Positions 1 through 33,483 of a stretch of 34,353 nt of DNA are shown piece by piece. Source of the stretch: Malacoraja senta (Eukaryota); NCBI GenBank assembly GCA_038087875.1, contig JAXLNO010001468.1:124001-158353 (forward strand). Reading direction: 5' to 3'. The notes under the pieces are model-generated. The model searched no databases and was not told the DNA's origin. It saw only the letters and a list, made by a program, of their open reading frames with translations. Position 1 is the first letter of the stretch, and each line of letters opens with the position of its first letter. The translations under genes and the position numbers were made by a program.

Positions 1-1633
1 GTGAGAGTAGGAATGGAGTGAGGTGGAGGATAAATGCGTGGCTGAGGAACTGGTGCAGCGGGCAGGGATTCAATTTCTGGATCATTGGGACCTCTTTTGG
101 GGAAGGTGTGACCTGTACAGAAAGGACGGGTTGCACTTGAACACGAGGGGGACCAATATCCTGGCGGGGAGATTTGCAAAGGCTACTGGGGAGACTTTAA
201 ACTACAACGGTTGGGGGGAGGGACTCAAATAGAGAAAGCTAGTGGAAAATGTGGGAGGCAGGAGGCAGAGAAGGGAAGCACTCGGACCCAAAATGTAGGG
301 GAGAAAGAAGAAAAAGATAATAAACAGAGAATAAGTGGTGGTGGGTTTCTTAAATGTGTATATTTTAATGCTAGGAGCATTGTAAGAAAGGTGGATGAAC
401 TTAGAGCCTGGATTGACACCTGGAAGTATGATGTTGTGGCGATCAGTGAAACATGGTTGCAGGAGGGCTGTGATTGGCAAATAAATATTCCAGGATTTCG
501 TTGCTTCAGGGGTGATAGAATTGGAGGGGCAAGAGGTGGGGGTGTTGCATTGCTTGTCAAGGAAGATATTACAGCAGTGCTTTGGCAGGATAGATTAGAG
601 GGCTCGTCTAGGGAGGCTATTTGGGTGGAACTGAGAAATGGGAAAGGTGTAGCAACACTTATAAGGGTGTATTATAGACCGCCAAATGGGGAGCGGGAAT
701 TGGAAGAGCAAATATGTAAGGAGATAGCAGATATTAGTAGTAAGCACAAGGTAGTGATTGTGGGAGATTTCAATTTTCCACACATAGACTGGGAAACACA
801 TTCTGTAAAAGGGCTGGATGGTTTGGAGTTTGTAAAATGTGTGCAAGATAGTTTTTTGCAGCAATACATAGAGGTACCTACTAGAGAAGGGGCAGTGCTG
901 GACCTCCTGTTAGGAAATGAGACAGGGCAGGTGGCGGAGGTATGCGTCGGGGAGCACTTCGGGTCCAGTGATCACAATACCATTAGTTTCAATATAATTA
1001 TGGAGAGTGTCAGAACTGGACCTAGGGTTGAGACTTTTGTTTGGAGAAAGGCTAACTTTGAGGAGATGCGAAAGGATTTAAAAGGAGTGAATTGGGACAT
1101 GTTGTTTTATGGGAAGGATGTAGAAGAAAAATGGAGGACATTTAAGGGTGAAATTTTAAGAGTACAGAATCTTTATGTCCCTGTTCGGTTGAAAGGAAAT
1201 AGTAAAAAATGGAAAGAGCCATGGTTTTCAAGGGAAATTGGACACGGTTCGGAAAAAGAGAGAGATCTACAATAATTATAGGCAGCATGGAGTAAATGAG
1301 GTGCTTGAGGAGTATAAAGAATGTAAAAAGAATATTAAGAAAGAAATTAGAAAAGCTAAAAGAAGATATGAGGTTGCTTTGGCAAGTAAGGTGAAAGTAA
1401 ATCCAAAGGGTTTCTACAGCTATATTAATAGCAAAATGATAACAAGGAATAAAATTGGTCCATTAGAGAGTCAGAGTGGACAGCTATCTGCAGAGCCAAA
1501 AGAGATGGGGGAGATATTGAACAATTTCTTTTCTTCGGTATTTACGAAGGAGAAGAATATGGAATTATGTGAGGTAAGGGAAACAAGCAGAGTAGCAATG
1601 GAAACTGTGAGATTCAAAGAAGAGGAGGTGCGG
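1..1633 (+). mobile_element. CR1 LINE fragment: end of ORF1 (SGNH esterase-like) and N-terminal ORF2 (AP endonuclease), frameshifted, 3'-truncated
   Basis: DGLHLN..GT.ILA (ORF1); CVYFNARSI, AISETWL, YRPP, VGDFNFP, LDLLL, SDHN (APE). Frameshift near 1240-1275. Confidence 0.92.
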
Positions 1634-2109
1634 ACAATTTATATTTCTTCAACATAACAACTAATTGTTTTTCCTCACATTGATCTTTGTGAGAATGTGC
1701 TGCACCCCTCAGATTCCTATTAAGTCTTTTCCCCTACACATTAAACCTATGGTCTCTGGTCCTTGATTCACCTACTCTGGGCAAGAGATTATGTGCATCT
1801 ACCCGATCTATTCATCTCATGATGTATATTAATGATTGTTACAATCATAGATTATTGCAATGTATGATAATCACCATGAGATGTGGGTTTAAGTTTTTGT
1901 TCAAGGAATTAGGCACAAAAAGCTAGAAAGTCTCTCCAGTCCTGTGCCAAAGGATGGCAGCAGTTAGTTACACTTTCACATAAGTTGTTAAATTAAAGTC
2001 CCCTCTAGTTGACATAAAAGATTCTGTAACACAATTTTAAATTTAAAGTGGCAGAGTTCTGCCCAATTTATTCTAGTATCCTGGTCAATATTTATCACTA
2101 AACCAACAT

Positions 2110-2205
2110 CAGTCTGAAGAAGGATCCCAACTTGAAACGTTACCCATCCATGTTCTCCAGGGATGTTACCTGACCCACTGAGTTACTCCAGAACTTTGTG
2201 TCTTT
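2110..2205 (+). mobile_element. Degenerate Penelope pLTR-derived short repeat (duplicated at ~3454-3549)
   Basis: cagtctgaagaagg...gaaacgttaccc...gagttactccagaactttgtgtc resembles the intact copies at 12132 and 14475. Confidence 0.75.
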
Positions 2206-2478
2206 TTGTTGTTGTAAATCAGCATATACAATTTATTTTTCTTCATCATTACAACTAATTGTTTTTCCTCACATTGCTCTTTGTGAGAATGTGCTGCACC
2301 ACATTTCGTTGCTTCACGTCAAAGGCACTTTATTGGTGATAAAGTGTTTGCGTAGTCCTGAATGGTATGAATGCTCCCCCATAAATCCAAGTCATTCTTC
2401 CCCCCCCTCATAATAATTCAAGTGAAAATACTTTTCACATTCAGTTCCTGTAAATTTCTCATTAATTTCCATACAAAC

Positions 2479-2742
2479 CTTGAACCTGGAGTTTGTTGTT
2501 GTTGATCTGCTTCCCCAGAGCATTAGTGGCCTCACATTGATACTGTCCTGCATCAGCTGGCTGGACAGCACGGATTGTCAATGTCCCATTCTCAGAGTCT
2601 AGCTCGCTCCATCCGCTCGATGACTGCCTCCTCAGTACCAGCTGGGCAGGGGGGTTGGACTGGGTTGTGCAGCTGAACGTGACCCTGTCTCCTTCCTTCA
2701 CCGCAGAGGGGGTGATGGAGAGAGTGGTGTCCCTGGGGCTAC
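2479..2742 (-). CDS. vcam1: VCAM1-like Ig exon, D7-like copy B (264 bp), same protein sequence as copy A
   Basis: Same splice sites as copy A, open frame, two synonymous differences. Inclusion in mRNA is not shown by the sequence. Confidence 0.8.
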
Positions 2743-2812
2743 CTGAGACCAGAGGCGTGAGAAATTAATGAATTGCAAAAGGTTTAGCCAAATCCGTGCA
2801 AAGAAACATAGT

Positions 2813-3172
2813 CATAGCCATAAAGTGATATAGTGTGGAAACAGGCCCTTCGGCCCAACTTGCCCACACCAGCCATCATGTCCCAGCTACACTAGTCCCG
2901 CCTGCCCGTGTTTGGTCCATGTCCCTCCAAACCTGTCCTATCCATGTACCTGTCTGACTGTTTCTTAAATGTTGGGATAGTCACAGCCTCAACTACCTCC
3001 TCTAGCAGCTTGTTCCATACACCCACCACCCTTGGTGTAAAAAAATTACCCCTCAGATTCCTATTAAGTCTTTCCCCCTACACATTAAACCTATGTTCTC
3101 TGGTCCTCGATTCACCTACTCTGGGCAAGAGACTCTGTGCATCTACCCGATCTATTCATCTCATGATGTATA
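2813..3172 (-). mobile_element. CR1 3' end, chimeric junction copy of the duplication
   Basis: Reverse complement of the CR1 ORF2 C-terminus/3'UTR with a (ctatga)-type tail. Left part matches 4157-4326; right part matches 1704-1828. Confidence 0.85.
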
Positions 3173-3822
3173 TTAATGATTGTTACAATCATAGATTATT
3201 GCAATGTATGATAATCACCATGAGATGTGGGTTTAAGTTTTTGTTCAAGGAATTAGGCACAAAATGCTAGAAAGTCTCTCCAGTCCTGTGCCAAAGGATG
3301 GCAGCAGTTAGTTACACTTTCCCATAAGTTGTTAAATTAAAGTCCCCTCTAGTTGACATAAAAGATTCTGTAACACAATTTTAAATTTAAAGTGGCAGAG
3401 TTCTGCCCAATTTATTCTAGTATCCTGGTCAATATTTATCACTAAACCAACATCAGTCTGAAGAAGGATCCCAACTTGAAACGTTACCCATCCATGTTCT
3501 CCAGGGATGTTACCTGACCCACTGAGTTACTCCAGAACTTTGTGTCTTTTTGTTGTTGTAAATCAGCATATACAATTTATTTTTCTTCATCATTACAACT
3601 AATTGTTTTTCCTCACATTGCTCTTTGTGAGAATGTGTTGCACCACATTTCGTTGCTTCACGTCAAAGGCACTTTATTGGTGATAAAGTGTTTGCGTAGT
3701 CCTGAATGGTATGAATGCTCCCCCATAAATCCAAGTCATTCTTCCCCCCCCTCATAATAATTCAAGTGAAAATACTTTTCACATTCAGTTCCTGTAAATT
3801 TCTCATTAATTTCCATACAAAC

Positions 3823-4086
3823 CTTGAACCTGGAGTTTGTTGTTGTTGATCTGCTTCCCCAGAGCATTAGTGGCCTCGCATTGATACTGTCCTGCATCAG
3901 CTGGCTGGACAGCACGGATTGTCAATGTCCCATTCTCAGAGTCTAGCTCGCTCCATCCGCTCGATGACTGCCTCCTCAGTACCAGCTGGGCAGGGGGGTT
4001 GGACTGGGTTGTGCAGCTGAACGTGACCCTGTCTCCTTCCTTCACAGCAGAGGGGGTGATGGAGAGAGTGGTGTCCCTGGGGCTAC
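3823..4086 (-). CDS. vcam1: VCAM1-like Ig exon, D7-like copy A (264 bp)
   Basis: tctcag| acceptor, |gtttgt donor, phase 1-1. GSPRDTTLSITPSAVKEGDRVTFSC...ENGTLTIRAVQPADAGQYQCEATNALG...LQVQG resembles human D7 (VKEGD, DAG.Y.CE, L.VQG). Confidence 0.9.
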
Positions 4087-4152
4087 CTGAGACCAGAGGC
4101 ATGAGAAATTAATGAATTGCAAAAGGTTTAGCCAAATCCGTGCAAAGAAACA

Positions 4153-4670
4153 TATTCATAGCCATAAAGTGATATAGTGTGGAAACAGGCCCTTCGGCTC
4201 AACTTGCCCACACCAGCCATCATGTCCCAGCTACACTAGTCCCGCCTGCCCGTGTTTGGTCCATGTCCCTCCAAACCTGTCCTATCCATGTACCTGTCTG
4301 ACTGTTTCTTAAATGTTGGGATAGTCCCAGCCTAAACTACCTCCTCTAGCAACTTGTTCCATACATCCCACCAGCCTTTGTGTGAAAAAGTTACCCCTCA
4401 GATTCCTATTAAATCTTTTCCCCTACACATTATACCTATGTCTGGTCATCGATGCATCCACCCTAGGCAAAAGACTCTGTGCATCCACCCGATGTATTCC
4501 TCTCATGATTTATACACCTCTATAAGATCACCCCTCATCTGTGCTGCAAGGAATAGTCCCAACCTGCCCAACCTCTCCCTATAGCTCAGACCCTCTAGCA
4601 CAGGCAATATCCTGGTAAATCTTCTCTGCTCCCTTTCCAACTTGACCACGTCTTTCCTATAACAGTGATG
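4153..4670 (-). mobile_element. CR1 3' end in the intron between D3 and D7-A
   Basis: Same family as 2813-3172, 16716-16925, 22144-22462 and 27568-27805. Extends into degenerate ORF2 C-terminal codons. Confidence 0.85.
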
Positions 4671-4699
4671 GTAAAATTACAATAGTGAAAGCCACGCAC

Positions 4700-4966
4700 C
4701 TTGAACATGTAATTCCACTTCCTTGGTGATTGTCCCCAGTTTATTGCTGGCTTCACAGCAGTACATTCCCGTGTCCCCGAACAGGGCCGTTGACAGGTGC
4801 AGAATCGCTCGGTCCTTGGCCACGACTGACCAGTTGCCGGCGGATAACTTGCTCCACACAATCCTGGCAGCGGGGCTGCTGTCTGCAGCACAGGTTAGCC
4901 GAACATCCTGACCCTCTCTCACTGTGGCAGACGGCTCTGCAGTAATGTCAATCCCTGTGGGAGCAT
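4700..4966 (-). CDS. vcam1: VCAM1-like Ig domain 3 exon (267 bp; D3/D6-like)
   Basis: ctacag| acceptor, |gtgcgt donor, phase 1-1. YAPTGIDITAEPSATVREGQDVRLTC...IVWSK...DTGMYCCEASNKLG...EVELHVQ. Confidence 0.92.
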
Positions 4967-5084
4967 CTGTAGAAGGAGATGGGATAATTCAGTACAATAA
5001 AGGCGGGCGACTTAAACCATTGTCCAGACTAAGTCTATAACTGTGACTCCTTTCTCAATGTTATATCTCTGTCTCCATACTTAC

Positions 5085-5387
5085 AGTGAACCTGTAACGT
5101 TAGAGTCCCGTGGGCCTTGTGTGGTTGGTTCTCCGTGAGTAATTCCACTCGGCATGTCAGCTCTTGTCCCGAGTCTCCCAATTCGGCCGTCAGTTCGTAG
5201 GTGAAGGTCATCGCCGTTTCTTCCTCTGTGTAGTCACGGAACGTGTCGGTCTTCAGCACCGTTGTTCCTTTCAGCCATTCCACCTCCACATGAGCGGGGT
5301 ACAATTTGGGGACCGTACATCTCACAGAGCCTCTCTGGCCAACTTCCAGACTGCCCACTGTCTCCACGATGAGGGTGTCGGACAGAG
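5085..5387 (-). CDS. vcam1: VCAM1-like Ig domain 2 exon (303 bp)
   Basis: ttgcag| acceptor, |gtaagt donor, phase 1-1. SLSDTLIVETVGSLEVGQRGSVRCTVPKLYPAHVEVEWLKG...GQELTCRVEL resembles VCAM1 D2/D5 (G.LE.G...V.C.V...YP, LKG). Confidence 0.92.
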
Positions 5388-5454
5388 CTGCAACGACACA
5401 TGGATTCAGGGATCAAACAGGGATTCAGGGTGGAATGTACAGCACCCAAGGTGC

Positions 5455-5700
5455 CCATCGATTTAGTCAGAGGGTGGTGAATCTGCGGAATTCATTGCCA
5501 CAGAAGGCTGTGGAGGCCAAGGCAATGGATATATTTAAGGCGGAGATAGGTAGATTCTTGATTAGTATGGGTGTCAGAGGTTATGGGGAGAAGGGAGGAG
5601 AATGGGGTTAGGAGGGAGAGATAGGTCAGCCATGATTGAATGGCGGAATAGACTCGATGGGCCGAATGGGCGAATTCTGCTCCTTATGAACTTATGATTT
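5455..5700 (+). mobile_element. CR1 3' end in the D1-D2 intron
   Basis: FSQRVVNLRNSLPQKAVEA...GYGEK followed by the 3'UTR gatgggccgaatgg and a ttatga tail. Confidence 0.88.
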
Positions 5701-5944
5701 GTTACTAAACTCTCATTCCAATCAGTAAAAGGACCACTTTCATGTTAGAAAACATTCATGAAGCTGTTAACTAAAATATTTGTTGAAGACCAAAACAGGC
5801 AATCGTTGGAAGGCCCTGAATAAAACAGCGTGTGGTGGAAATACTCATCTGGCAGAGAAAACAGAGGTGATTCTTGTCGGTTAGAGACTTTTGCTCTCTC
5901 CGGACGCTGCGCTACAACGTGTGAAATCTCCCCAGAACAATGAC

Positions 5945-6130
5945 CTTTCAGTGTTAGGAAGAAACTGCAGATGCTGGTTTAAACCGAAGATGGACGCAAA
6001 AAGCTGGAGTAACTCAGCGGGACAGGCAGCATCTCTGAGAGAGAAGGAACGGGTGAGATTTCGGGTCGAGATTCTGTTTCTCTCTTCGTGGAGGCTGCCC
6101 GAATAGTTGAGTGTTGCCAGTATTTTTTTT
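5945..6130 (-). mobile_element. Penelope pLTR-derived repeat with degenerate hammerhead core, possibly with a decayed opposite arm
   Basis: aggaagaaactgcagatgctgg...gctggagtaactcagcgggacaggcagcatc matches the family. Confidence 0.7.
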
Positions 6131-6192
6131 ACTTTTACCTGGACGTACAAAGTTGCAACAAGTTTACAGTCAGGAGATGGGTTAATACTCAC

Positions 6193-6468
6193 AGAATATA
6201 TTGAGGTTGACATATTTTCGTTTTTCTTCTGCGCCGCATTTTGCGGAACAAATGTACTTGTGTTCGTTCTGCGGGGTAACCGCGGAGATGGTGAATGTGG
6301 ACACCGAGCCCGGAGTTGTGATTGTTCCGCCCAGGGGGTTATCGGTCCCGATTCTCCACGTGAAGGTCGGAGACGAGCAGCTCTTCGCCAGACATTTCAA
6401 CTCCAGCGAGTCCCCGATACGAGCCCACACGTTTCCAGACGGGTTTAACTCCAAATTGAAGGCGGCTC
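6193..6468 (-). CDS. vcam1: VCAM1-like Ig domain 1 exon (276 bp)
   Basis: ctgcag| acceptor, |gtgagt donor, phase 1-1. FNLELNPSGNVWARIGDSLELKCLAKSCSSPTFTWRIGTDNPLGG...NEHKYICSAKC matches the VCAM1 D1/D4 pattern (IGDS, CxxxxC.SP.F.WR, D.PL.G, NEH.Y.CxxxC; four Cys). Confidence 0.95.
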
Positions 6469-6657
6469 CTGCAGTTTTGAAACAAAACAAAAGCAATATT
6501 ATTTTTTAAAAGCTTACAAGTTTAACGCTTTAAATATTCACCTCTTTATTTCTTTAAACAAACAGATACCAAAATTGATACTTTGGTGCCTGATATTCAA
6601 CACAAAACGAATCAGAAGAAAATGCAGATTATTAGTGCTGTAAAATAAATTAGAAAC

Positions 6658-6718
6658 CTGTGGCGAGCAGCAATGCAAGAGTGATTGTAGCGGCTGGGTC
6701 GCATCTCCCTCCCGCCAT
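6658..6718 (-). CDS. vcam1: VCAM1-like exon 1, signal peptide (MAGGRCDPAATITLALLLAT-G)
   Basis: ATG at 6718 in strong Kozak context (gaaccATGg), hydrophobic core, phase-1 donor G|gtttct. Splices in frame to the next exon, giving ...LLLATGAA/FNLEL, comparable to human ...FAASQA/FKIET. Downstream of a TATA box. Confidence 0.85.
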
Positions 6719-6817
6719 GGTTCAGCCTGCACTCGGACACACACAAGCCGAGGTTGACTTCACTTCTGCAAGGGGCGCCAGGCTCTGGAGCTGTGAGCCT
6801 GGGCTCCGCCGCCCCGC

Positions 6818-6823
6818 TTTATA
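6818..6823 (-). promoter_or_regulatory. TATA box (TATAAA) of the VCAM1-like gene
   Basis: Minus-strand ggggtTATAAAgcgg, ~100 bp upstream of the ATG. Predicts a TSS near 6790. Confidence 0.75.
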
Positions 6824-6841
6824 ACCCCGTCTGGAAGAGCA

Positions 6842-6852
6842 GGGGACTCCCC
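6842..6852. promoter_or_regulatory. Second kappaB-type palindrome GGGGACTCCCC, next to a TGACG CRE half-site (6854-6861, minus)
   Basis: p50-type 5-1-5 palindrome ~20-30 bp upstream of the TATA box. Confidence 0.6.
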
Positions 6853-6916
6853 TTGGCGTCAGGCGAACATTCCCGACCACGCACCGTTCACTGGCTCCTG
6901 GTCTTTCTCTGCTGAA

Positions 6917-6927
6917 GGGAATTTCCC
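6917..6927. promoter_or_regulatory. NF-kappaB site GGGAATTTCCC
   Basis: Canonical GGGRNWYYCC match ~95-105 bp upstream of the TATA box. VCAM1 is an established NF-kappaB target. Confidence 0.75.
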
Positions 6928-8019
6928 ACAAAGGGCATCACAGTTCAAATAACCACATAATTATTTCACAAATTTCCCAATTCCATATCTTGCAGATCAT
7001 AACCAGACACTTATGGAAGCGCAGAATCGCGTAATCTTTTTTTAATGCATTTTACGCACGAACGAGAGCCACTCGGCCCATTGAGTTCGTGCCACTCCCG
7101 CCCCTCTCCCCATGGTCTTGCAAATCCTTTCCTTCCATTAATGTTTCCAGCTTTCTTGGAATGCAAGCACGGAATGTGTTTCGTTTCTCTCATGTCACTA
7201 TTAATTATTTGCCAATCGCCTTCTTTCTTTTTCACCTCCTTTTTGACGCCAGGACCAATTTATTTTCGACTTTCAACCATCTTCACTGGCCTATGCCCAC
7301 ATCAGTTTCCTCCCGTGTTATGTTTCAAAGAGACTATAGAAGGACACATATCGAATGCAGCACAGGGTGTGGGGTCATTGAGCCCACTGTGTCTTTTCCA
7401 ACTCTCTACCAGAGCACCTGATAAATCAGATCATACCCCGAGTCCCTCTGCTCATGCACCTCTTTTGGGATAGTATGCTTTATTCCACATTGTCCAGCCC
7501 ACCAAACTGCAGCACCGTACATTTCTCTGCATGAGGATCAAAGGAAATATTTTAGGAGTGGGTCATTTGTCCCCTCGGGCTTGCTCTACTAATCATCAAG
7601 ATCATAGCTGATCTTCTAACTCCATCTCATTTTCTCTGGCTATTCATAAATCCCTTCCTTCCGTGATTATCTGAACATTACTCCTCATCTGAATTATCTA
7701 ATGTTTGTTCCATGACTGAGATCTCTGGTTCAGATTTCTCAGAGAAGGAAAACATCCTCCCTGTATCCTCTTATCCTAATCTCGAGAGAAAAACAGGTCC
7801 AGTCTATTCAATATCTCCTCCTATTGAAACTTACCATTCCTGGAACCAGTCTGCTGATATTTTTTTTGCCCTTTATACAAGAACATGTCTTTCGGTTACA
7901 GAGAACAAAACTGAACATAACGCCCCACGTGTAGTTTTCCTAAGGATCTTTGTAATTGCAGAAAGACATCCTTACTCCTGTACTCAAATACTCTCATCAT
8001 AAGGTTACATACTTTTACT

Positions 8020-8125
8020 TCCTAAATTCTGCTCTAACTCCATTTACAAGTTTGTAGATGATACCACCATAGTGGATCGAATCTCGAACAATGATGAGAT
8101 GGAGTACAGGAAGTAGAGAGATTAG
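8020..8125 (+). mobile_element. Rex1/Babar-like RT fragment
   Basis: Translates to SNSIYKFVDDTTIVDRISNNDEMEYRK (KFADDTT motif). Confidence 0.6.
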
Positions 8126-8134
8126 TAATAGGGT

Positions 8135-8412
8135 AGACACAAAATGCTGGAGTAACTCAGCGGGACAGGCAGCATCTCTGGAGAGAAGGAATGGGTGACG
8201 TTTTGGGTCGAGACCCTTCCTCTGATGTCAGCGGAGTGGGCAGGACAGAGATTGAATGTAGATGGAGACAGTAACACTGGTGGGAGAACTTGGAAGGGGA
8301 GGGGATGGAGAGAGAGGGGAAGCAAGGGCGATTTGAAGTTAGAGAAGTCAACGTTCATACCGCTGGGGTGTAAGCTACCCACGCATAATATGAGGTACTG
8401 TTCCTTTGTAAA
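8135..8412 (-). mobile_element. 5'-truncated Penelope-like element (end of GIY-YIG ORF plus pLTR)
   Basis: GSLHPSGMNVDFSNFK* as in the 14005-14570 copy. Possible TSD agtaatagggt (8124-8134) / agtaatagagt (8413-8423). Confidence 0.85.
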
Positions 8413-8899
8413 AGTAATAGAGTGACCACATCAACCTCTACTTTGACATTAGCAAAACAAAAGTTCTGGTCATTGATGTAGGAAGCAGGGTGTAGTACAC
8501 ACCCCATTGCACAACAGTGAAGCTGCAGTTAAGATGGTCAACCGTTTCCAGTTCCCAACAATTCTTCCTGATCCGACCACATTGATGCCACAGCCAAGAG
8601 CCTCTACATCCTCAGAAAACAAAGAAATCAGCATGTCTCCAATAATTCTCCACTTATTATCACTGTTGCAGGTTGGAGGAATACTGATCCACTGGGACAA
8701 GCATGGGACCACCAGCACCACCACGTGGTCAAGACTGAGCTGCCGGGAAAAGCCCTAGACATCCAGTGCCGTCACTGAGGCCAGGATTGAGTGGCCGGGC
8801 AAGCCTGAGACTGACTGCCAGTGCCTCACAGATAATGAGGGACTGTGCCCACATACGAGGCAAAGATATTGAACCTGGTGACATCCCCGATGCTCCAGC

Positions 8900-11580
8900 G
8901 TTTATTCCCACTCTTTGCCTTCTACCTGTCAGCCAATCTTCTATCCATTCTGGTATCGTGCCTCTAATACCATGGGGTCCAATCTTGTTTAGCAGCTATG
9001 TGTGCGGCACCTTATCAAAGGCCTTCCGGAAATCCAAGTAAACAATATCGACTGACTCTCCTATGTTCATCATTCTTGTCTGCCTATTTTACCATGTGCC
9101 TCCAAGTACCATGACACCTCATCCTTAATAATGGACTCTAAAATCTTCGAACTTCAGAAGTCAGGCTAATTGGCTTAAAGTTTCCTTTCTTTTGTCTTGC
9201 TCCCTTCTTAGTGGAGTTACATTTGTGATTTTCCAGTCCTCTGGAATCATTCCTGACTCTAGTGATTCTTGAAAGGTCGCTAGTAATGCCTCTACAATCT
9301 TTACAGCTATCTTTTTCAGAGCCCGAGGGTGTAATGCATCTTGTCCAGGTAATTTATTCACCTTCAATCTTTTAGCTTCCCAAGCACCTTCTCCTCATGC
9401 TCTAAGAAACTGCACTCATTTCTGCCCCCTGACTCTCTTGAAATTCTGGCATGTTGCTGTGTCTTTCACTGTGAAACTGATGCAAAAAACATTCAGTTCG
9501 TCTGCCATCTCTTTGTTCCCAATGACTACTTCTCCAGTATTATTTTCCAGTTGTCCAATGTCCACTCTTGCCTCTCTTTTACTCCTTATACATCCGAATT
9601 TTTTTTTAATATCCTCTTTTATATCATTGGCATGCTTACCCTCATCGTTTTCCCCCATAATGCTTTTTTAGTTGTCTTCTCTTGGTTTTTGAAAGCTTCC
9701 TAATCATCTAGCTTCCTGATAATATTTGCCACATGATATGATTTCTCTTTAGCTTAATGCTGTCTTTGACTTCCTATGTCAGCAATGGTTGTCTCATTCT
9801 CCCTTTGGTATGTTTCTTCTTCTTTGGGGCAAAAAGATCCTGAGTCTTACAAGTTACTCCCAGAAACTCCTGCCATTGCTGCTCCTTCATCATTCCTGCT
9901 GGGGTCCCTTTCCAATCAAATTTAGCCTGCTCCTCCCTCATGCCTCTGTAGTCACCTTTACTCAACAGTAATACTGATACATCCAATTTTAGTTTCTCCT
10001 TCTCAAACTGTAGGTTGAAACGTATCATATTATGATCACTGCCTCCTAGGGGTTCCTTCACCTTAAGCTCCCTAATCAAATCTGGTTCATTACGCCAAAT
10101 CCAGAATCGCCTTTTCCCTAGTAGACTCAACCACAAGCTGCTCTAAGAAGCCATCATGTAGGCATTCTACAAATTCCTTCTCTTGGGATCCCGTACCAAC
10201 CTGATTTTCCCAGTCTACCTGAGTATTGAAATCTCCCATGAGCACTGTAACATTGCCTTTCTTACATGCTGATTGTACCTCCGGATGTCATTTGTTCCCC
10301 ATTTCCTGGCGGCTAGTTTTCGGAGGCCTGTATGTGACTCCCATCAGGGTCTTTTTACCCTTTTCTTAGTTTCTTAGCTGTACCCACAAGGATTCTACAT
10401 TTTCTGATCCTATGTTACCCCTTGCTAAGGACTGAATTTCATTCCTGACCAGCAGAGATACCCCACCACCTCTGCCTACCTGTCTGTCTTTTCGATAGGA
10501 TGTGTAGCCTTGTATATTCAGCTCTCATCTCTGATCCTCTTTCAGCCACGACTCTGTGATGCCCGCAATGTGGTACCTGCCAAATTCTAGCCGCGCTATA
10601 AGCTCATCCTTATTTTATGTTCTGCGTGCATTCAAATATAACACCTTTAGTTCAGTATTCACTCTTCTCGAATTGGTCCCCATGTTGCCTGACATTAGAC
10701 TCTTATCCCCTACTAAACTCTCAGTTCTATTTCTTATTCCTGAGACTTCAGTAACCTCTCCTGTGCTCTCCTTCCATTTAATTTTAACCATACGTTTCCA
10801 ATCTGAAATCTGCTGAAACATTCCACCATTTAGTTTAATCCACAGCACCAGTTATGTGATTTGCCAGAACCCTGGTCCCAACAGCGTTCAGGTGGAGTCG
10901 GTCCCATCGGAACAGCTCCCTCCTTCCTCAATACTGATGCCAATGTCCCATGACTACTTCCACACTAATCTTTGAGCTAGCCATTCATCTCTTTAATCTT
11001 ATCACGCCTATGCCAATTTGCTCATGGCTCAGGTAGCAATCCAGTGCTTAATTCCATTTTGGTTCTGATTTGTAATTTAATCCCTATCTGCTCAAATTCC
11101 CTCAGCAGAATCTCTTTCCTTGTTCCACTTCCATCATTGGTAGCCACATGGACTCCGACAACTGGATCTTCCCCCTCCCACTGCAAATTAATCTGCAGGT
11201 CAGATGAAATGTCCTGAACTCAGGCACCAGGCAGGCAACAGCCTTTGGGGCTCTTGATCCTTGCGAGAATTTTGTCCATTTCCCCAACTATACCATCCCC
11301 AATTATAACTAAGTTTCTCTTCTCTTCCCCCTTTTGAGTGGCTCGCTGATCCACGATGCCATGGTTAGGTTGATCATCCTTCCTACAGCCCCCAGGGAGC
11401 AAGAATCTCAGGCCTGTTAGACAAGCTCCTCCAACACTGCCTCTTGGATTCCCCCTACCTGCCTCACTCACAGTCACACCCTCCTTCTCCTGACCATGGG
11501 CCGAATTAAAAGTAGTTATTCTACTAACAGGTGTGACTACCGCCAGAAACACAGTATAATTCTCCCCATCCCTGATATGC
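8900..11580 (-). mobile_element. Old decayed CR1 LINE (ORF1 esterase, APE, partial RT)
   Basis: LVIIGDGIV/CLPGA (ORF1), LKVLYLNAR, LGGSDHNMI, PEDWKITNVTP, VDIVYLDFRKAFDKVPH; many stops and frameshifts. Confidence 0.88.
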
Positions 11581-11624
11581 CACCGATTCTAGCTTATGGA
11601 AACATTTTCTCATGAGTGAGTGTG

Positions 11625-11956
11625 CAGGATTGATAGAGGTCTTTAAAATTATGAGCGGGTTAGACAGAGTTGACATGGATAAGCTTTTTCCATTGAGAGT
11701 AGGGAAGATTCAAACAAGGGGACATGACTTGAGAATTAAGGGACAGAAGTTTGGGGGTAACATTAGGGGGAACTTCTTTACTCAGAGAGTGGTAGCTGTG
11801 TGGAATGAGCTTCCAGTGGAAGTGGTGGAGGCTGGTTCGATTTTATCCTTTAAAAATAGATTGGATGGGTATTATGGACGGGAAAGGAATGGAGGGTTAT
11901 GGTCTGAGTGCAGGTAGATGGGACTAGGGGGAAGTATTTTATTTTTTATTTTTTTA

Positions 11957-12007
<51 letters not shown>

Positions 12008-12080
12008 TTCGGCACGGACTTGAAGGGCCGAGATGGCCTGTTTCCGTGCTGTAATGGTTATATGGTTATATGGTTACATT
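11625..12080 (+). mobile_element. CR1 3' end with embedded (AAT)n
   Basis: LIEVFKIMSGLDRVD...FFTQRVVAVWNELP; (ggttatat) tail repeats. Confidence 0.9.
11958..12006. repeat. (AAT)n microsatellite, ~16 units
   Basis: Seen directly. Confidence 0.97.
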
Positions 12081-12131
12081 CCACACAAAAGCATAGTAAG
12101 ATGCTGAAAGACTAGGGTGTCCTTAAATCTG

Positions 12132-12228
12132 AAGATAGACACAAAATGCTGGAGTAACTCAGCGGGTCAGACAGCATCTCTGGAGGAAAGGAATAGGTGA
12201 CGTTTCGGGTCGAGACCCTTCTTCAGAC
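12132..12228 (-). mobile_element. 97-bp Penelope pLTR insert with intact minimal hammerhead core
   Basis: TSD ccttaaatctg (12121-12131) / ccttgaatctg (12229-12239). Confidence 0.85.
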
Positions 12229-12230
12229 CC
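12196..12230 (-). ncRNA. Minimal type I hammerhead ribozyme motif
   Basis: Minus strand gggt-CTGAAGA-a-gggtctcgaccc-GAAAC-GTC/acct: conserved core, 4-5 bp stem II, palindromic ACGU helix III, 3-4 bp stem I. Confidence 0.7.
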
Positions 12231-12720
12231 TTGAATCTGGCTGTGTGATGTTTTCACCGTATATGAGCACCATCTATGGTGCTGAATCCTTCTGCTGTGT
12301 CACATAGCTGCATGGAAGGTACACATATTTAGAGATGCAACAAAGCCTACTGCTTTCCACTTGCTCAGCCTGCTTAACTACTGATTTATAATACACAGAT
12401 GATCACATAGGTCCCATCCAGGCACAAAATGAGGACTGACAATGGAACACTCATCAAAGTCAACCTTGCACGATATTACTCATGAACATCTGGGCAACTC
12501 ATCCTTATATGGGGCAAAAATGTCCTACAGCTTGATGAACTCACAGTCAGACATGATCATACTCACAGAAACAAGTTCCAAACAAAATCCTATCATCTTT
12601 CTTCAGCATAAACTCCCTCCTTTATCCTTTAGTGGTCCTAACTTCTCCCTAGTTACCCTCTCATTTTTAATGCATATACAAAAAGCATTGGGATTCTCTT
12701 TAATCTGACTTAGCAATGAC

Positions 12721-13041
12721 AGGGCAGCACAGTGGTACAGCTGGTAAAGCTGCTGCCTCTCAGCACCAGAGACCCGGGTTCTATTCTGACCTCGGGTGCT
12801 GTCTGGGTGGAGTTTGCATGTTCTCCCTCTGACCACGTGGTTTCCCTCCGGGTGCCTAAGTTTCCTCCCACATCCCAAAGACATGCGGGTTTGTAGGTTA
12901 ATTGACTTCTATATATAGCCCCTCGCGTGAAGGGATGAGAAAGTGGGATAACATAGAACTGGTGTGAATGGATACTTGATATTTGGTATGGTCTCAGTGG
13001 GCTGAAGCTGTATCAATGTTGTATCTCTAAACTAAACTAAA
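12721..13041 (+). mobile_element. tRNA-derived V-SINE (HE1-like)
   Basis: A box tggtacagctgg, B box gggttctattc, V-domain-like gtggagtttgcatgttctccc...ttcctcccacatcccaaagac, (taaac)n tail. Confidence 0.85.
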
Positions 13042-13611: not shown

Positions 13612-14570
13612 TTTAAGAAAGAACTGCAGATGCTGGAAAAATCGAAGGTAGACAAAAATGCTGGAGAAACTCAGCGGGTGAGGCAGCATCCATGGAGCGA
13701 AGGAATAGGTGACGTTTCGGGTTGAGACCCTTCTTCAGGCTGATGTGGGTGTGGGGGGGGGCAGGAAGAAGATAGGAAGAGGGGTGGGCTGTGGGAGAGC
13801 TAGGAAGGGGAGGGGAAGGAGGGAGAAAGCAAGGACTATCTGAAATTGGAGAGGTCAATGTTCATACCGCTGGGGTGTAAACTACCCAAGCAAAATATGA
13901 GGTGTTGCTCCTCCAATTTGCGATGGGACTTACTCTGGCCATGGAGGAGGCCCAGGACAGAAAGGTCAGATTCGGAATGAGAGGGGGAGTTGAAGTGCCA
14001 CACTTGTCGCTTTACCTCCGCCCTCGACTCCATCCAAGGACCCAAGTAGTCATTCCAGGTAAGGCAGAGGTTCACCTGCATCTCCTCCAACCTCATCTAT
14101 TGCATCCGCTGTTCTAGGTGTCAACTGCTCTACATCGGTGAGACCAAGCGTAGGCTTGGCGAACGCTTTGCCCAACACCTCCGCTCAGTTCGCAATAACC
14201 AACCTGATCTCCCGGTAGCTCAGCACTTCAACTCCCCCTCCCATTCTGAATCTGACCTTTCTGACCTGGGCCTCCTCCATGGCCAGAGTGAGTCCCACTG
14301 CAAATTGGAGGAACAGCACCTCATATTTCGCTTGGGCAGTTTACATCCCAGCGGTATGAACATTGACCTCCAATTTCAGGTAGTCCTTGCTTTCTCCCAC
14401 CTTCCCCTCCCCTTCCTCGGTCTCCCACAGCCTACTGTCTCTGCCTCTTCCTTTCTTCTTCCCCCCCACCCCCACATCAGTCTGAAGAAGGGTCTCGACC
14501 CGAAACGTCACCTATTCCTTCGCTCCATAGATGCTGCCTCACCCGCTGAGTTTCTCCAGCATTTTTGTCT
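13612..14570. mobile_element. Penelope-like element as a back-to-back inverted pair; plus arm encodes a GIY-YIG endonuclease remnant
   Basis: FTCISSNLIYCIRCSRCQLLYIGETKRRLGERFAQH...LEEQHLIFRLGSLHPSGMNID. Minus arm ~13612-14000. TSD accgttccaaaaatg (13597-13611) / actgttccaaaaatg (14571-14585). Confidence 0.93.
14479..14512 (+). ncRNA. Minimal hammerhead motif in the Penelope pLTR
   Basis: agt-CTGAAGA-a-gggtctcgaccc-GAAAC-GTC/acc. Stem I is only 2 bp. Confidence 0.6.
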
Positions 14571-14779
14571 ACTGTTCCAAAAATGCTCAGCCACAGAAAC
14601 TCCAGTCATATGGTCAAGCTTATTTCCCACTAAAAGATCCAATGTGGTCCATCCTCAAGTGGGATTATCCACATATTTCTCCAAGAGGATCTCTTAGATT
14701 CACAGAACTAATTTTCCTCCATCCAATCTTCTTGCATTACGGAAGTCCCAGTCAATTGGGAAGATAAAGCTACTCAGTA

Positions 14780-16531: not shown

Positions 16532-16715
16532 AAAGCAGGAAATGTCCTTTAGCAATAACAATGATTTATGGGATCCCTGTGTGCACAGGATTATTCGCTG
16601 AATCCAGGCAGAATCAGAACCTATCACCGCATCCCAACCAAACCGGAAATGGAATTTAAAAATGGCTTGGGGAATATATGAAACTTTAGATGCTGTCCAT
16701 GTAATACTAGAGATG

Positions 16716-16925
16716 TCATAGTCATAGAATGATACAGTGTGGAAATAGGCCCTTCGGCCCAACTTGCCCACACCGGCCGACATGTCCCAGCTACACTAGT
16801 CCCACCTGCCCGTGCTTGGTCCAACCGGACCTATCCATGTACCTATCTAACTGTCTCTTAAACGTTGGGATAGTCCCAGCCTCAACTATCTCCTCTGGCA
16901 GCTTGTTACATACACCCACCACTAC
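16716..16925 (-). mobile_element. CR1 3' end
   Basis: VVGVCNKLPEEIVEAGTIPTFKRQLDRYMD; (ctatga) tail. Confidence 0.88.
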
Positions 16926-21863: not shown

Positions 21864-22035
21864 NNNNNNNNNNNNNNNNNNNNNNNNNNNNNNNNNNNNN
21901 NNNNNNNNNNNNNNNNNNNNNNNNNNNNNNNNNNNNNNNNNNNNNNNNNNNNNNNNNNNNNNNNNNNNNNNNNNNNNNNNNNNNNNNNNNNNNNNNNNNN
22001 NNNNNNNNNNNNNNNNNNNNNNNNNNNNNNNNNNN
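21864..22035. other. Assembly gap, 172 N
   Basis: Run of N. Confidence 1.
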
Positions 22036-22143: not shown

Positions 22144-22462
22144 GCATAGAGTCATAGTCATAGAGTGATACAGTGTGGAAACAGGCCCTTCGGCCCAACT
22201 CGCCAACACCAGCCAACAATGTCCCAGCTCCACTACTTGCCTGCGCTTGGTCCATATCCCTCCAAACCTGTCCTATCCATGTACCTGTCTAACTGTTTCT
22301 TAAATGTTGGGATAGTCCCAGCCTCAAGTACCTCCTGTGGCACCTTGTTCCATACACCCACCACCCTTTGTGCGAAAAAGTTAACCCTCGGATTCCTATT
22401 AAATCTTTTCCCCTTCACCTTGAACCTATGTCCTCTGGTCCTCGATTCCCCTACTCTGGGCA
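22144..22462 (-). mobile_element. CR1 3' end
   Basis: GESRTRGHRFKVKG...FFAQRVVGVWNKVP...GLEGYGP. Confidence 0.9.
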
Positions 22463-23149
22463 TGAAGTTGCCAAATTAATTTCATGTCAAAGAAAATTGT
22501 CCATTAGTTGGTGTCATTCCCCACACACAAGAAGTTGGTGTAGTTGTAGGAAGTCAATTATTCCAGCCAAAGCACATGAGGAATTAGAGGACAGTGTCCC
22601 ACGACTACCTCTCTACAGCTGACACATCATAAGGTTAATGGTTCAATGGTTCAATAGTTTATTTATTGTCACATGTACCAGGTACAGTGAAATACATTTT
22701 TTGCATACAGATCAGTAAGACTACCCCCATATATCAGAAGTGAGGACTATCACTCATGGCTCTACAATATTCAATTGCATCGTTGACTCCTCCGAAAATG
22801 AAGCAATCCGCGCTTGCATGCAACCAGACCTAGAAGGCACCAAGTATGGGCTGATAAATGTAAGGGTGTCTGTAGTTTATGCAAGTATTTTGGCTGGTAT
22901 GTCATCATATAGTGTTGTCTGTGCCCAGATCAGATTTGGACCGCACACAAGTAAGGTAGAAGTTCTGTTTAAGATTGTTTGCTACTTTAGAAAGTTCATT
23001 AAGTATATCGTCAGCCTCTGAATACCCGGATCACATTTTCTTTTCTTTCTTTATTTTCTTTATCTGGGATTTTTGGGAGATGGGATACATCGTCAAAGGA
23101 ATTTAAAGACTCTACTACTTTACTAGACGTAGGATCCCATCATTTACTG

Positions 23150-25869: not shown

Positions 25870-26088
25870 GTGTAGGAAGGAACTGCAGATGCTGGTTTAA
25901 ATCAAAGATAGACGCAAAATGCTGGAGTAACTCAACCGGACAGGCAGCATCTCTGGAGAGAAGGAATGGGTGACGTTTCGGGCCGAGACCCTTCTTCAGA
26001 CTGTTCTCGACTCGAAACGTCACCCATTCCTTCTCTCCAGAGATGCTGCCTGTCCTGCTGAGTTACTCTAGCATTTTGTGTCTATTTT
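25870..26088. mobile_element. Penelope pLTR fold-back insert
   Basis: Inverted arms. TSD ctgcttttttat (25858-25869) / ctgctttttat (26089-26099). Confidence 0.85.
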
Positions 26089-27567
26089 CTGCTTTTTATT
26101 CATTGGCTGACTTGAAGGCGCTAAATTCTATTGAGACAATTCATATTCATAAACTTTTGCATTGGTTTGCACAGATATATTGAGCTGGAACAGAATCCAC
26201 ACTTGCCATTCACAGATCAGTGGTTCTGTCATAAAGTGTGAGATGCCCCTGCAGAAGGAATTTACGTAACTCAAGGAAGAGCAAGGGCCAAAAGAAAGTA
26301 TCAGAATTTCATTAGTGCAGGTTCCAGGAAAAGATGGACGATTTTGCATTTAAAACCTTTTTGTAGCCTCTCCCAAAGGCAACATGAAGAGAATAATTTG
26401 CTTCTGATCATTAAACAAAAGGTATCCTGATCATTGTACAGCTTTTTATAGCTCCTTACTGTTACAAGATCACACAGCCCAACATGGGCCATGTTATTTC
26501 ATCATTTGGAAATCTCTATCCTGGAGAGATGAACAATTAAATAGATTTAAGTCTGGGACCGATTTTTGGTCACACAGGGAGTCAAGAATTAGAAATGGGA
26601 AAGGAGTAGGATTGCAGGTCAAGATTAGATGATTTCATTGAATGGCAAGGCAGACTCAATGGACCCTCTGGACAACTACTGCTGCTTTTGGTTGTGTTCA
26701 CATGAACTAGGAACAAGAGCATGAGACGGGATTAGTAACAGCAACATGAACATGAGATTATCTTCACATGAACCCACGATCAGGAAATCTGGCAGAAATG
26801 CCAGTGCTCGAGACCGCCCCAAAATTACAGACCAGTCGGCGATTTTTGCACAAAACAACAGCTTGCTCCATTTTTTTGCTCACAATCACTATGGAGCAGC
26901 CACCTGCAATGTTCTACAAGAAAATAAGATCTGTGGTTAAAACAAAAAGTTGTTCTATCATGTTGGGACTGGAAGGCTATAAAATGATTCGGAATATAAT
27001 TTAAATCCTAGCTTCATGGACAGATGGTATGAAACAAAACAAACAAGGCCTGCTGGAACTGTAAATAACAACTCATATTTTTCTGGCAGCACAATTGGTA
27101 AGAAAAAATAGTCACTGACCAAACAATGAAGGAAAATAACGTGTCTCGCAGAAAGAGAAGGGAAGCAAAAATCCACACAAAATGCTGCAGAACTCAAGGT
27201 CAAAGGGACTCCAAGCCTAACATTCCGTGCCTTAAACAATCCTGGCCATGACAGTGTCCTGAGATTAGCCTTATCTCCGGCGGGTGATGTGGGGTGAGAC
27301 TGATGGCTGCAAGAGGACTCTGTGAACTAGCACTTAAATTAACTTAAATGATCATCAGTAAAATGGAAGAATTTGAGAATTGAAACAATAGCTTTTGTCC
27401 AAGTCAATAAACTTAATCTGGTCAAAAGTTGGGGATAACAATTGGACTAGAAATGAAAATAAAGAAAAGTTTAGTCTTCCAGAATACACATCAGGATTGC
27501 TAATAAAACAGGAATTTATCGCTAATAATTTCTACCCTCCTTCTTACAATTGTCACAGGCTGTACAT

Positions 27568-27805
27568 TATAGAGTCATAGTCATAGAGTGTGGAAACAGG
27601 CCCTTCGGCCCAACTTGCCCACACCGGCCAACATGTCCTAGCTACACTAGTCCCACCTGCCCGCGTTTGGTCCATATCCCTCCAAACCTGACCTATCCAT
27701 GTACCTGTCTAACTGTTTCTTAAATGTTGGGATAGTCCCTGCCTCCACTACCTCCTCTGACAGCTCGTTCCATACATCCACCACCCTTTGTGTGAAAAAA
27801 TTAAG
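27568..27805 (-). mobile_element. CR1 3' end
   Basis: Same family as 22144-22462. Confidence 0.88.
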
Positions 27806-28885: not shown

Positions 28886-30012
28886 TTCAATTTCAGAGTT
28901 AAATAAAATTTCTCATGGGTGGGGGGGGGGGGCGAAGGTTAGGTTGTTAGCCAAGAAAGATAGACCAAGAACGATGTTACTGTACTGAGGGATAGCCAAG
29001 TCTATCCCTCATTGATAGCAGCTGATGGGAAGCGGCTGTAAAGTGGGAAGCGGCTGTAAAAGGACAGCGCAGCTGGGAGTGGGGGGGGGGTAGAGTTTCT
29101 TTCACAGCGTGTGGGGAGTCTTGCCAGGGGTAAAATTGCGGGGAGGGCAGGAGCGTTGAGAAGGAGGGGGTCGGGGATCATGCCAGCATCCAGCTCAAGA
29201 GCGGGTCAGCGGGCGATGGATAACAGGACAGCGGGCGGTGGAGCTTACTCCATATGTCAGTGTGAGTAACCTCAATTGGTCCCTTGTTCGCGCTGACACA
29301 GGAGTAAGCTCCACTGCCCGCTGTCCTGTTATCCATCACCTGCTGACCCACTCCGCTCTATGATCTTTGCTCTTGAGCTGGTCCCCTCACTGTTCAGACG
29401 GAGAGCACTGCCAGAGGTGAGCGGGCCGGCAGAAGGCGCTGATGTCCTGACGGCCGCTCGTAGCCATGCGAGCTGCTTCCCTCCCCGGCAACAATGTGGC
29501 GTCTCCGCGCCCGGAATGCCGCGGCAGCGGTGAGTGAGTGGGTTACTGGCATGATCCCCAACCCCGCTCCTTCTCAAAGCTGTTGCTCTCCCCACAACTT
29601 TACCCCTGGCCATGACTCCCCACACACTGTGAAAGGAACTCTCCCCCCAATTGGTCCCTTGAACAAGTATTGTCATTCAATAAGATCACAACTGATTCAA
29701 CTTGTCCCGGTGTGCTCCCGTTTTTCCACCATCTCTCCACCTGCCATCACCCTCCACCCCCCACCCATTCAGTAATTCAGAAAGATGGAGGTTTGGAAGC
29801 CTTGTGCAAATTGAAATGTTACTTACTTTCTTTTTCTTTTTTCTTTTTACGGTGAGAACAATCTGCGCATGCGCGGTTTAAGATTTTTTTAATAGCCGAC
29901 TGACTGCCTACCCTGAGTAATTACTCATGGCACGTGCCTGAATATGACTCATTTATAATTATATATTTATATTTCTATGAAAATTGTTCCCAATTGGGCC
30001 CTGCACCTCCTA

Positions 30013-33273: not shown

Positions 33274-33483
33274 AGACACAAAATGCTGGAGTAACTCGGC
33301 GGGACAGGCAGCATCGCTGGAGCGACGGAATGGGTGACGTTTCGGGTCGAGACCCTTCTTCAGACTTCTTCTGTCTGAAAAGTGACCCATTTCTTCTCTC
33401 CAGAGATGCTGGCTGTCTCGCTGAGTTACTCTAGCATTTTGTGCCTATCTTCAGTGTAAACCAGCATCTGCCGTTCCTTCTTA
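33274..33483. mobile_element. Penelope pLTR fold-back insert; minus arm has an intact hammerhead core (33333-33366)
   Basis: Perfect 15-bp TSD catattcacgaaagc (33259-33273 / 33484-33498). Confidence 0.9.

Follow-up and report, generated by a model that had tools for sequence, protein, structure and literature searches.

This study concerns an immunoglobulin (Ig) exon that occurs twice in a 34,353-nucleotide stretch of DNA from the skate Malacoraja senta (NCBI GenBank assembly GCA_038087875.1, contig JAXLNO010001468.1, positions 124,001 to 158,353 of the forward strand). The whole stretch is referred to as the window, and all positions are given within it. The exon lies in a gene on the minus strand that, judged by its domain structure, appears to belong to the VCAM1 family, with the Ig domains D1, D2 and D3 ahead of the repeated exon. 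A sequence-only reading of the window had described the two copies as a recent in-frame tandem duplication of the D7-like Ig exon of VCAM1. Our analysis instead favors, with a probability of roughly three in four, that they are the recently homogenised head of an old, species-variable array of Ig exons. The contribution would be mainly corrective, with the two copies read as an array head and not as a new two-copy event. The array itself can already be recognised in public gene models. The full-text literature, our coverage of which is incomplete, yielded no account of such exon arrays in the VCAM1 of skates or sharks.

The repeated unit in Malacoraja senta

Mismatches were counted at a fixed offset of 1344 bp, and the extension of homology was followed by gapped BLAST. 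A repeat search and a scan of offset identity placed a head-to-tail direct repeat with a period of 1344 bp at 1704-4514, with the following parts.

3173-4514, minus strand: array unit 1 in gene sense, carrying copy B of the exon (repeat search, offset mismatches, BLAST)
1829-3172, minus strand: array unit 2 in gene sense, carrying copy A of the exon (repeat search, offset mismatches, BLAST)
1634-1828, minus strand: remnant of a third unit (offset mismatches, BLAST)
4327-4514, minus strand: 5' edge of the array, which is the start of unit 1 within an interspersed repeat; not homogenised
1792-2982 paired with 3136-4326, no strand assigned: near-identical tract of 1191 bp, 99.3% identity, 8 mismatches
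2810-3172, no strand assigned: interspersed-repeat copy present in every unit (BLAST), with an equivalent copy at 4154-4514
4086-3823, minus strand: Ig exon copy B, 264 bp, phase 1-1, Pfam I-set; first after D3 in transcript order
2742-2479, minus strand: Ig exon copy A, 264 bp, phase 1-1, Pfam I-set

The earlier phasing of the units was 1704-3047 and 3048-4391. Identity at an offset of 1344 bp is 92-100% per 100 bp in 1701-3000 and about 25% elsewhere. Across 1704-2982, the first 1279 bp, there are 13 mismatches (98.98% identity), which bears out the description of two approximately 99% identical units of 1344 bp. Five of the mismatches fall in the first 88 bp (1704-1791) and eight in 1792-2982, and there are no insertions or deletions (indels) between the units through about 3021. 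A similarity this long and this identical cannot have arisen by chance. Gapped BLAST aligned 1704-3172 with 3048-4514 at 97.4% identity over 1470 columns, so that the repeated block comprises approximately 2.09 units and ends at 4514. The repeat had been given as 1704-4326; its existence stands, but position 4326 is the end of the near-identical tract only. That tract appears to mark a recent exchange or conversion.

Each unit holds, as had been described, one exon of 264 bp with phase 1-1 and intact splice sites, whose domain type in Pfam is a generic I-set Ig. The acceptor (ctggtctcag/GTAGCC) and the donor (TTCAAG/gtttgtatg) are the same in copies A and B, as is the encoded protein. Both of the base changes that distinguish the exons (2534/3878 and 2702/4046) are synonymous, as previously noted, although the first pair had been placed one base off (about 2535/3879). 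Since the phase is symmetric and the splice signals are identical in all copies, any copy number stays in frame. Each copy that is included would be expected to add one rigid Ig domain of 88 residues, without a linker, between the D1-D2 head and the membrane.

The junction from unit to unit lies at the end of the interspersed-repeat copy, at CTCATGAT (3165-3172), and the repeat runs on past this point solely in the copy at the array's 5' edge (4154-4514). Further copies of the repeat occur at 22150-22465, 16715-16922 and 27579-27803. On the other side of the two units, positions 1828-1704 of the remnant correspond to the first 125 bp of a unit and are about 95% identical to unit 2 (5-6 mismatches). 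A 747-bp deletion follows, with a junction at 1703/1704 that shows ACC microhomology, in which the exon and the remaining repeat of the third unit are gone. The last 70 bp of the remnant (1703-1634) align to unit positions 2300-2228 at 94.5%.

The array in other skates

An exhaustive profile-free search with the 87-residue exon gave as its top match a 1554-aa protein of Amblyraja radiata, XP_032885016.1, named 'hemicentin-2-like'. Its layout is D1-D2-D3 followed by 14 copies of the repeated domain. The loci of three skates were then compared with the window.

Amblyraja (L001): upstream gene with 14 copies at a spacing of 1344-2166 bp; downstream paralogue beginning 5.5 kb downstream
Rhinoraja longicauda (L002): upstream gene with 13 copies at a spacing of 1334-1346 bp, mostly 1344/1346; paralogue with 2 copies
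Leucoraja erinacea (L003): upstream gene with 1 copy and a fragment; downstream paralogue with 2 copies

All 34 of the 34 copies, including the two in the window, are 264 bp long and open, with an AG acceptor and an AAG/GTTTGT donor. The unit, with its interspersed repeat and a SINE-like piece (SINE, short interspersed nuclear element), is common to all four skates at the same period (1344-1346 bp). At their ends, just ahead of the next exon, the Amblyraja and Rhinoraja arrays have n whole units and then a common 42-bp piece of the interspersed repeat.

The window is collinear in two blocks (20118-9254 and 7094-3703), which take in its upstream 13 kb and the stretch from D1 to the first unit, with positions 1-13040 of the Amblyraja locus, which hold the 14-copy gene, at approximately 92% identity. 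The downstream paralogue of Amblyraja has only about 2 kb of promoter in common with the window. Thus, the gene in the window is the orthologue of the long-array gene. The Amblyraja orthologue and that of Rhinoraja (named 'VCAM1b') share with it the D1-D2-D3 head at 87-91% amino acid identity, the 264-bp exon at 88-94% amino acid identity and the intron unit at 93-94% nucleotide identity. They differ in having 14 and 13 intact copies, against two copies and a remnant visible in the window. In addition, homogenisation has made units 1 and 2 alike in M. senta, whereas the first unit stays distinct in Amblyraja and Leucoraja.

The name 'hemicentin-2-like' in RefSeq is a naming artefact that reflects the long run of Ig domains. 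Membership in the hemicentins was rejected: these are marked by a head with a VWA-type domain and an EGF/fibulin C-terminus, and the Amblyraja orthologue consists of a signal peptide, a VCAM1-type D1-D2 and Ig domains only. Two other public gene models, P0159 (2100 aa; L002 5001-54766) and P0160 (1067 aa; L003 5001-43720), each fuse two tandem VCAM1 paralogues. These cases call for caution in the annotation of such loci.

Several further features of these arrays were observed. In Rhinoraja, the eleven internal units (L002 10955-24671) are nearly identical, with branch lengths of 0-0.0075 and an identical protein, and the first and last units of the two paralogues pair with each other. This pattern points to a very recent amplification or to a gene duplication followed by expansion. 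Some Amblyraja units, but not others, contain an approximately 590-bp fold-back element that is related to the sequence at 13645-14572 of the window (L001 13347-13931, 17010-17592, 20079-20663, 21564-22148 and 27233-27810). Some of the units that bear it are without the distal intron segment, and the array has at least two unit subtypes, with periods of approximately 1344 and 1485-1585 bp. In the protein, both window copies read QINNNKLQ at a position where Amblyraja and Leucoraja read QINITK (QINVTK in one Amblyraja copy) and Rhinoraja reads QSNSTK. An N-I-T/N-S-T sequon near the end of the domain, present in other skates, is lost from the window copies, and the NGT sequon is kept.

Age and history of the two copies

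In a tree of the units, the two window units are sisters (support 99/96), the Rhinoraja units group by species, and Amblyraja and Leucoraja form a distinct clade of first units. Identity is 99% between the two window units and 93-94% between these and the Amblyraja units. Their edges have a different history from the homogenised tract. The 5' edge of unit 1 (4514-4327, about 190 bp) is about 85% identical to its equivalent in unit 2, with indels, and its nearest relative is unit 1 of Amblyraja (91%). The nearest relatives of the unit 2 edge are internal Amblyraja units (95-96%). Flanking homology at 85-94%, the remnant, the units in other skates and the tree together argue that the two copies do not represent a first duplication. 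The pattern is best described as concerted evolution. Recency, which had been claimed for the duplication, therefore holds for a homogenising exchange and not for a first two-copy event, as arrays of 14 and 13 copies exist in other skates. Units 1 and 2 differ by 0.7%, and the single-copy orthologous flank differs from Amblyraja by about 8%, from which the last exchange would be roughly a tenth as old as the split from Amblyraja. The last exchange thus appears to be recent, yet older than typical polymorphism.

The following history would account for these observations. Because the arrays consist of n units plus a short shared piece of the interspersed repeat, with the junction inside the repeat, the array probably started by recombination between two copies of this repeat that flanked the exon. 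It would be old, being common to skates of two families. Unequal crossing-over and gene conversion would then have caused copy number and identity between copies to vary by species. In M. senta, a recent exchange would have left 1191 bp of units 1 and 2 at 99.3% identity, and the third unit would have lost its exon to the 747-bp deletion, its remnant now adjoining a fragment of a long interspersed nuclear element (LINE). As all copies have phase 1-1 and the same splice sites, they could be included or skipped in any number.

Some observations weigh against this reading. The remnant matches unit 2 at no more than about 95%, so the history appears to be more complex than one event. A single unequal crossover was considered as the whole history and rejected, since it predicts a near-identical start of the remnant and 5-6 mismatches are seen in 125 bp. 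Our claim is for this reason limited to a mosaic produced by repeated exchange. Constraint on the domain sequence is also weak: the ratio of nonsynonymous to synonymous differences (pN/pS) comes to about 1.0 when the 14 Amblyraja copies are compared with one another and to 0.4-0.8 in comparisons between species. Some copies might therefore go unused, although weak constraint also fits a role of the domain as a spacer.

A single recent, first-time duplication of a D7-like exon that had been single-copy, perhaps still a segregating copy-number variant, would explain why the units are 99% identical without indels and sister in the tree, and why the exonic differences amount to two synonymous sites. 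It is nevertheless quite improbable, as homology runs at 85-94% past the near-identical tract, a third-unit remnant is present in the window, and the same unit and period are repeated 2-14 times in three other skates, with the same unit junction throughout their arrays. A divergence of 0.7%, about one twelfth of the 8% from Amblyraja, is older than typical polymorphism, though copy-number variation within the species is quite possible. An error of assembly, in which two haplotypes or the reads of one unit were placed in tandem or the copy number was mis-assembled, is also unlikely, if slightly less so. Tandem units this similar pose difficulties for assembly, the assembly contains a gap (a run of N occupies 21864-22035), and mis-joins could account for the odd junctions at 1703/1704 and 1633/1634. 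The nearest gap, however, is more than 17 kb from the repeat, and the junction between the units is the native one, as in 25 junctions of two other species. Unlike two alleles, the units diverge by about 15%, with indels, at their 5' edges, and these edges do not share a nearest relative in Amblyraja. The independent assemblies of three other skates also have at least two copies.

The least probable alternative, to which we give very little weight, is a decaying array head, in which one or both copies are intronic pseudo-exons or the gene is split. The remnant without an exon and the truncated LINE lie directly downstream, protein constraint is weak in relatives (pN/pS 0.4-1.0), and the upstream paralogue of Leucoraja, with one copy and a fragment, looks eroded. 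Both window copies are open, however, with an identical protein, intact conserved splice signals and synonymous differences only. Nor is splicing prevented by the mere presence of an antisense LINE fragment within an approximately 3-kb intron. Recent homogenisation at the head of an old array remains our preferred explanation.

The VCAM1-like gene and comparison with known systems

Of the gene, which lies on the minus strand, the window covers just the 5' half: the signal peptide, D1, D2, D3 and the two repeat exons. The exons upstream of the array, and the LINE fragment beside the unit remnant, are as follows.

6658-6718, minus strand: exon 1, start codon and signal peptide (MAGGRCDPAATITLALLLAT), phase 1 end, donor ACAG/gt
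6193-6468, minus strand: D1 exon, 276 bp, phase 1-1, four cysteines, loop RIGTDNPL, Pfam I-set
5085-5387, minus strand: D2 exon, 303 bp, phase 1-1, Pfam ICAM1_3_5_D2 (PF21146)
4700-4966, minus strand: D3 exon, 267 bp, phase 1-1, Pfam Ig_3/I-set
211-1633 (open reading frame fragment listed to 1657), plus strand: LINE fragment adjoining the unit remnant, endonuclease domain (open reading frames; Pfam PF03372, E 3e-17)

The assignment to the VCAM1 family, made earlier from sequence, agrees with the structure matches and with the names of relatives. The top solved-structure match of D1 is human VCAM1 D1 (1VCA/1VSC/1IJ9; E 8e-19), end to end over residues 1-88. All four cysteines are conserved, and the loop GTDNPL keeps the Asp of human QIDSPL. 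The top solved-structure match of D2 is human VCAM1 D2 (E 1e-5), and its Pfam PF21146 score is 28.7 bits at a cut-off of 27.5. D3 is 91% identical to Amblyraja D3 and has mammalian D3 and D6 as its top mammalian matches, and exon 1 matches the Amblyraja N-terminus at 78% over 27 aa (tblastn). Relatives carry VCAM1 or VCAM1-like names in RefSeq and UniRef. On these grounds the gene is taken to be a member of the VCAM1 family.

The window lacks the exons for the last domain, the transmembrane segment and the tail; a tblastn search with the tails of Leucoraja and Rhinoraja detected them at the loci of those two species but not here. No protein of this genome was returned by word-indexed searches (288-915 aa and 855-2720 aa), and an exact look-up of the 98-aa open reading frame over copy B gave no protein or contig of this genome. 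A transcript-like protein from Logan, P0170, was considered as cDNA evidence and rejected, being Leucoraja-like (86-92%) and from another species.

The LINE fragment is antisense to the gene, and its 3' side is cut at about 1633, where the unit remnant starts; it has no match at the Amblyraja locus L001. LINEs are not usually truncated on this side, which suggests that a deletion or rearrangement occurred later. The SINE-like element, approximately 100 bp long, is found once per array unit (2103-2237 and 3447-3581 in the window) and at about 15 other window sites in both orientations, often as facing pairs (for example, 8134-8225, 12136-12228, 14478-14572, 25910-26089 and 33274-33450). Further LINE-type open reading frames at 29977-32326 (plus strand) and 9416-10136 (minus strand) have endonuclease-like and reverse-transcriptase-like translations. 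The DNA upstream of the gene is rich in retroelements. The run of N at 21864-22035 is 172 long and is the sole one in the window.

VCAM1 is a textbook leukocyte-adhesion receptor, and its domain number is usually discussed solely in terms of the mammalian D1-3/D4-6 duplication and the splicing of D4. The mammalian protein has seven Ig domains, of which D4 is alternatively spliced. It shares with the skate gene the homologous D1, D2 and D3, a counterpart (D7) to the putatively D7-like fourth domain, and one Ig domain per phase 1-1 exon, by which isoforms are possible through exon skipping. In a comparison with seven-domain mammalian VCAM1, the skate D1 matches D1/D4, D2 matches D2/D5 and D3 matches D3/D6. 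The repeated exon scores best on D7 in four of six species (68-76 versus 53-68 bits) and ties in two. A first view, from amphibian and caecilian comparisons, that the D7-like label was unsupported was reversed by these seven-domain proteins. A domain tree leaves the relation of the exon to D7, D3 and D6 poorly resolved, so the label D7-like, as used in the earlier description, is weakly supported. By position the exon is domain 4 of cartilaginous-fish VCAM1, directly after D3.

One report (PMC2119269) describes the lengthening of the mammalian VCAM1 ectodomain by internal duplication, in which the three-domain block D1-3, including the integrin-binding domain, gave rise to D4-6 and a bivalent receptor. 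In skates, unlike mammals, only a putative non-binding stalk domain has been amplified, many times, with the copies kept near-identical, it appears, by concerted evolution. The claim that this route differs from the mammalian one is upheld, as D3 is not followed by another D1-like or D2-like exon, either in the window or in the arrays of the upstream skate genes. The skate locus would thus be a second, very different solution, in which one stalk domain is massively amplified and kept homogeneous by unequal exchange. In addition, with 1, 2, 13 and 14 copies the skate genes form a clean natural series in which any effect of stalk length on integrin-mediated adhesion could be studied.

Other VCAM1-like genes of cartilaginous fish have the same D1-D2-D3-D4 core and have repeatedly expanded the stalk, but no other group compared reaches the 13-14 copies seen in skates. 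There are three D4-type domains in Pristiophorus, Heptranchias, Heterodontus and Cetorhinus and five in Carcharodon X1. Pristis has one, the Narcine model has one as far as the model runs, and in Rhincodon and Stegostoma the single D4-type domain precedes a divergent last domain. Stingrays and a chimaera (elephant shark) repeat a two-domain D3-D4 module (P0164, P0165, P0039 and P0154), whereas in sharks and skates it is only D4 that is repeated. Predicted isoforms in sharks have lengths separated by whole multiples of 88 aa, for example 880 versus 704 aa in Carcharodon and 712 versus 624 aa in Heptranchias.

A further likeness is to human LPA kringle IV-2 (KIV-2) and the CR1 long homologous repeats. 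These are in-frame tandem arrays whose units, each of exon plus intron, are held near-identical through unequal exchange, introns included. Their copy number is variable and sets the length of the protein, and the polymorphism is documented within the species. The domain types differ, being kringle and SCR in LPA and CR1 and Ig in the skates. Several features of this kind of array are nonetheless present in the skate gene: the units are head to tail, each comprises a whole symmetric-phase exon with its intron, and copies resemble one another more closely within one genome than across species, in the introns too. Variation of copy number in skates is seen between species and paralogues only (14, 13, 2, 2 and 1). 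It is a tentative and rather doubtful further proposal that skate VCAM1 has a coding tandem-repeat stalk of approximately 2 to 14 or more copies, with fast turnover through unequal exchange, which is polymorphic within species and can be trimmed by exon skipping. If so, how far the integrin-binding head stands from the endothelial surface would be a tunable and heritable trait, and the skate array would be an elasmobranch counterpart, in a leukocyte-adhesion receptor, of the length polymorphisms of LPA KIV-2 and CR1.

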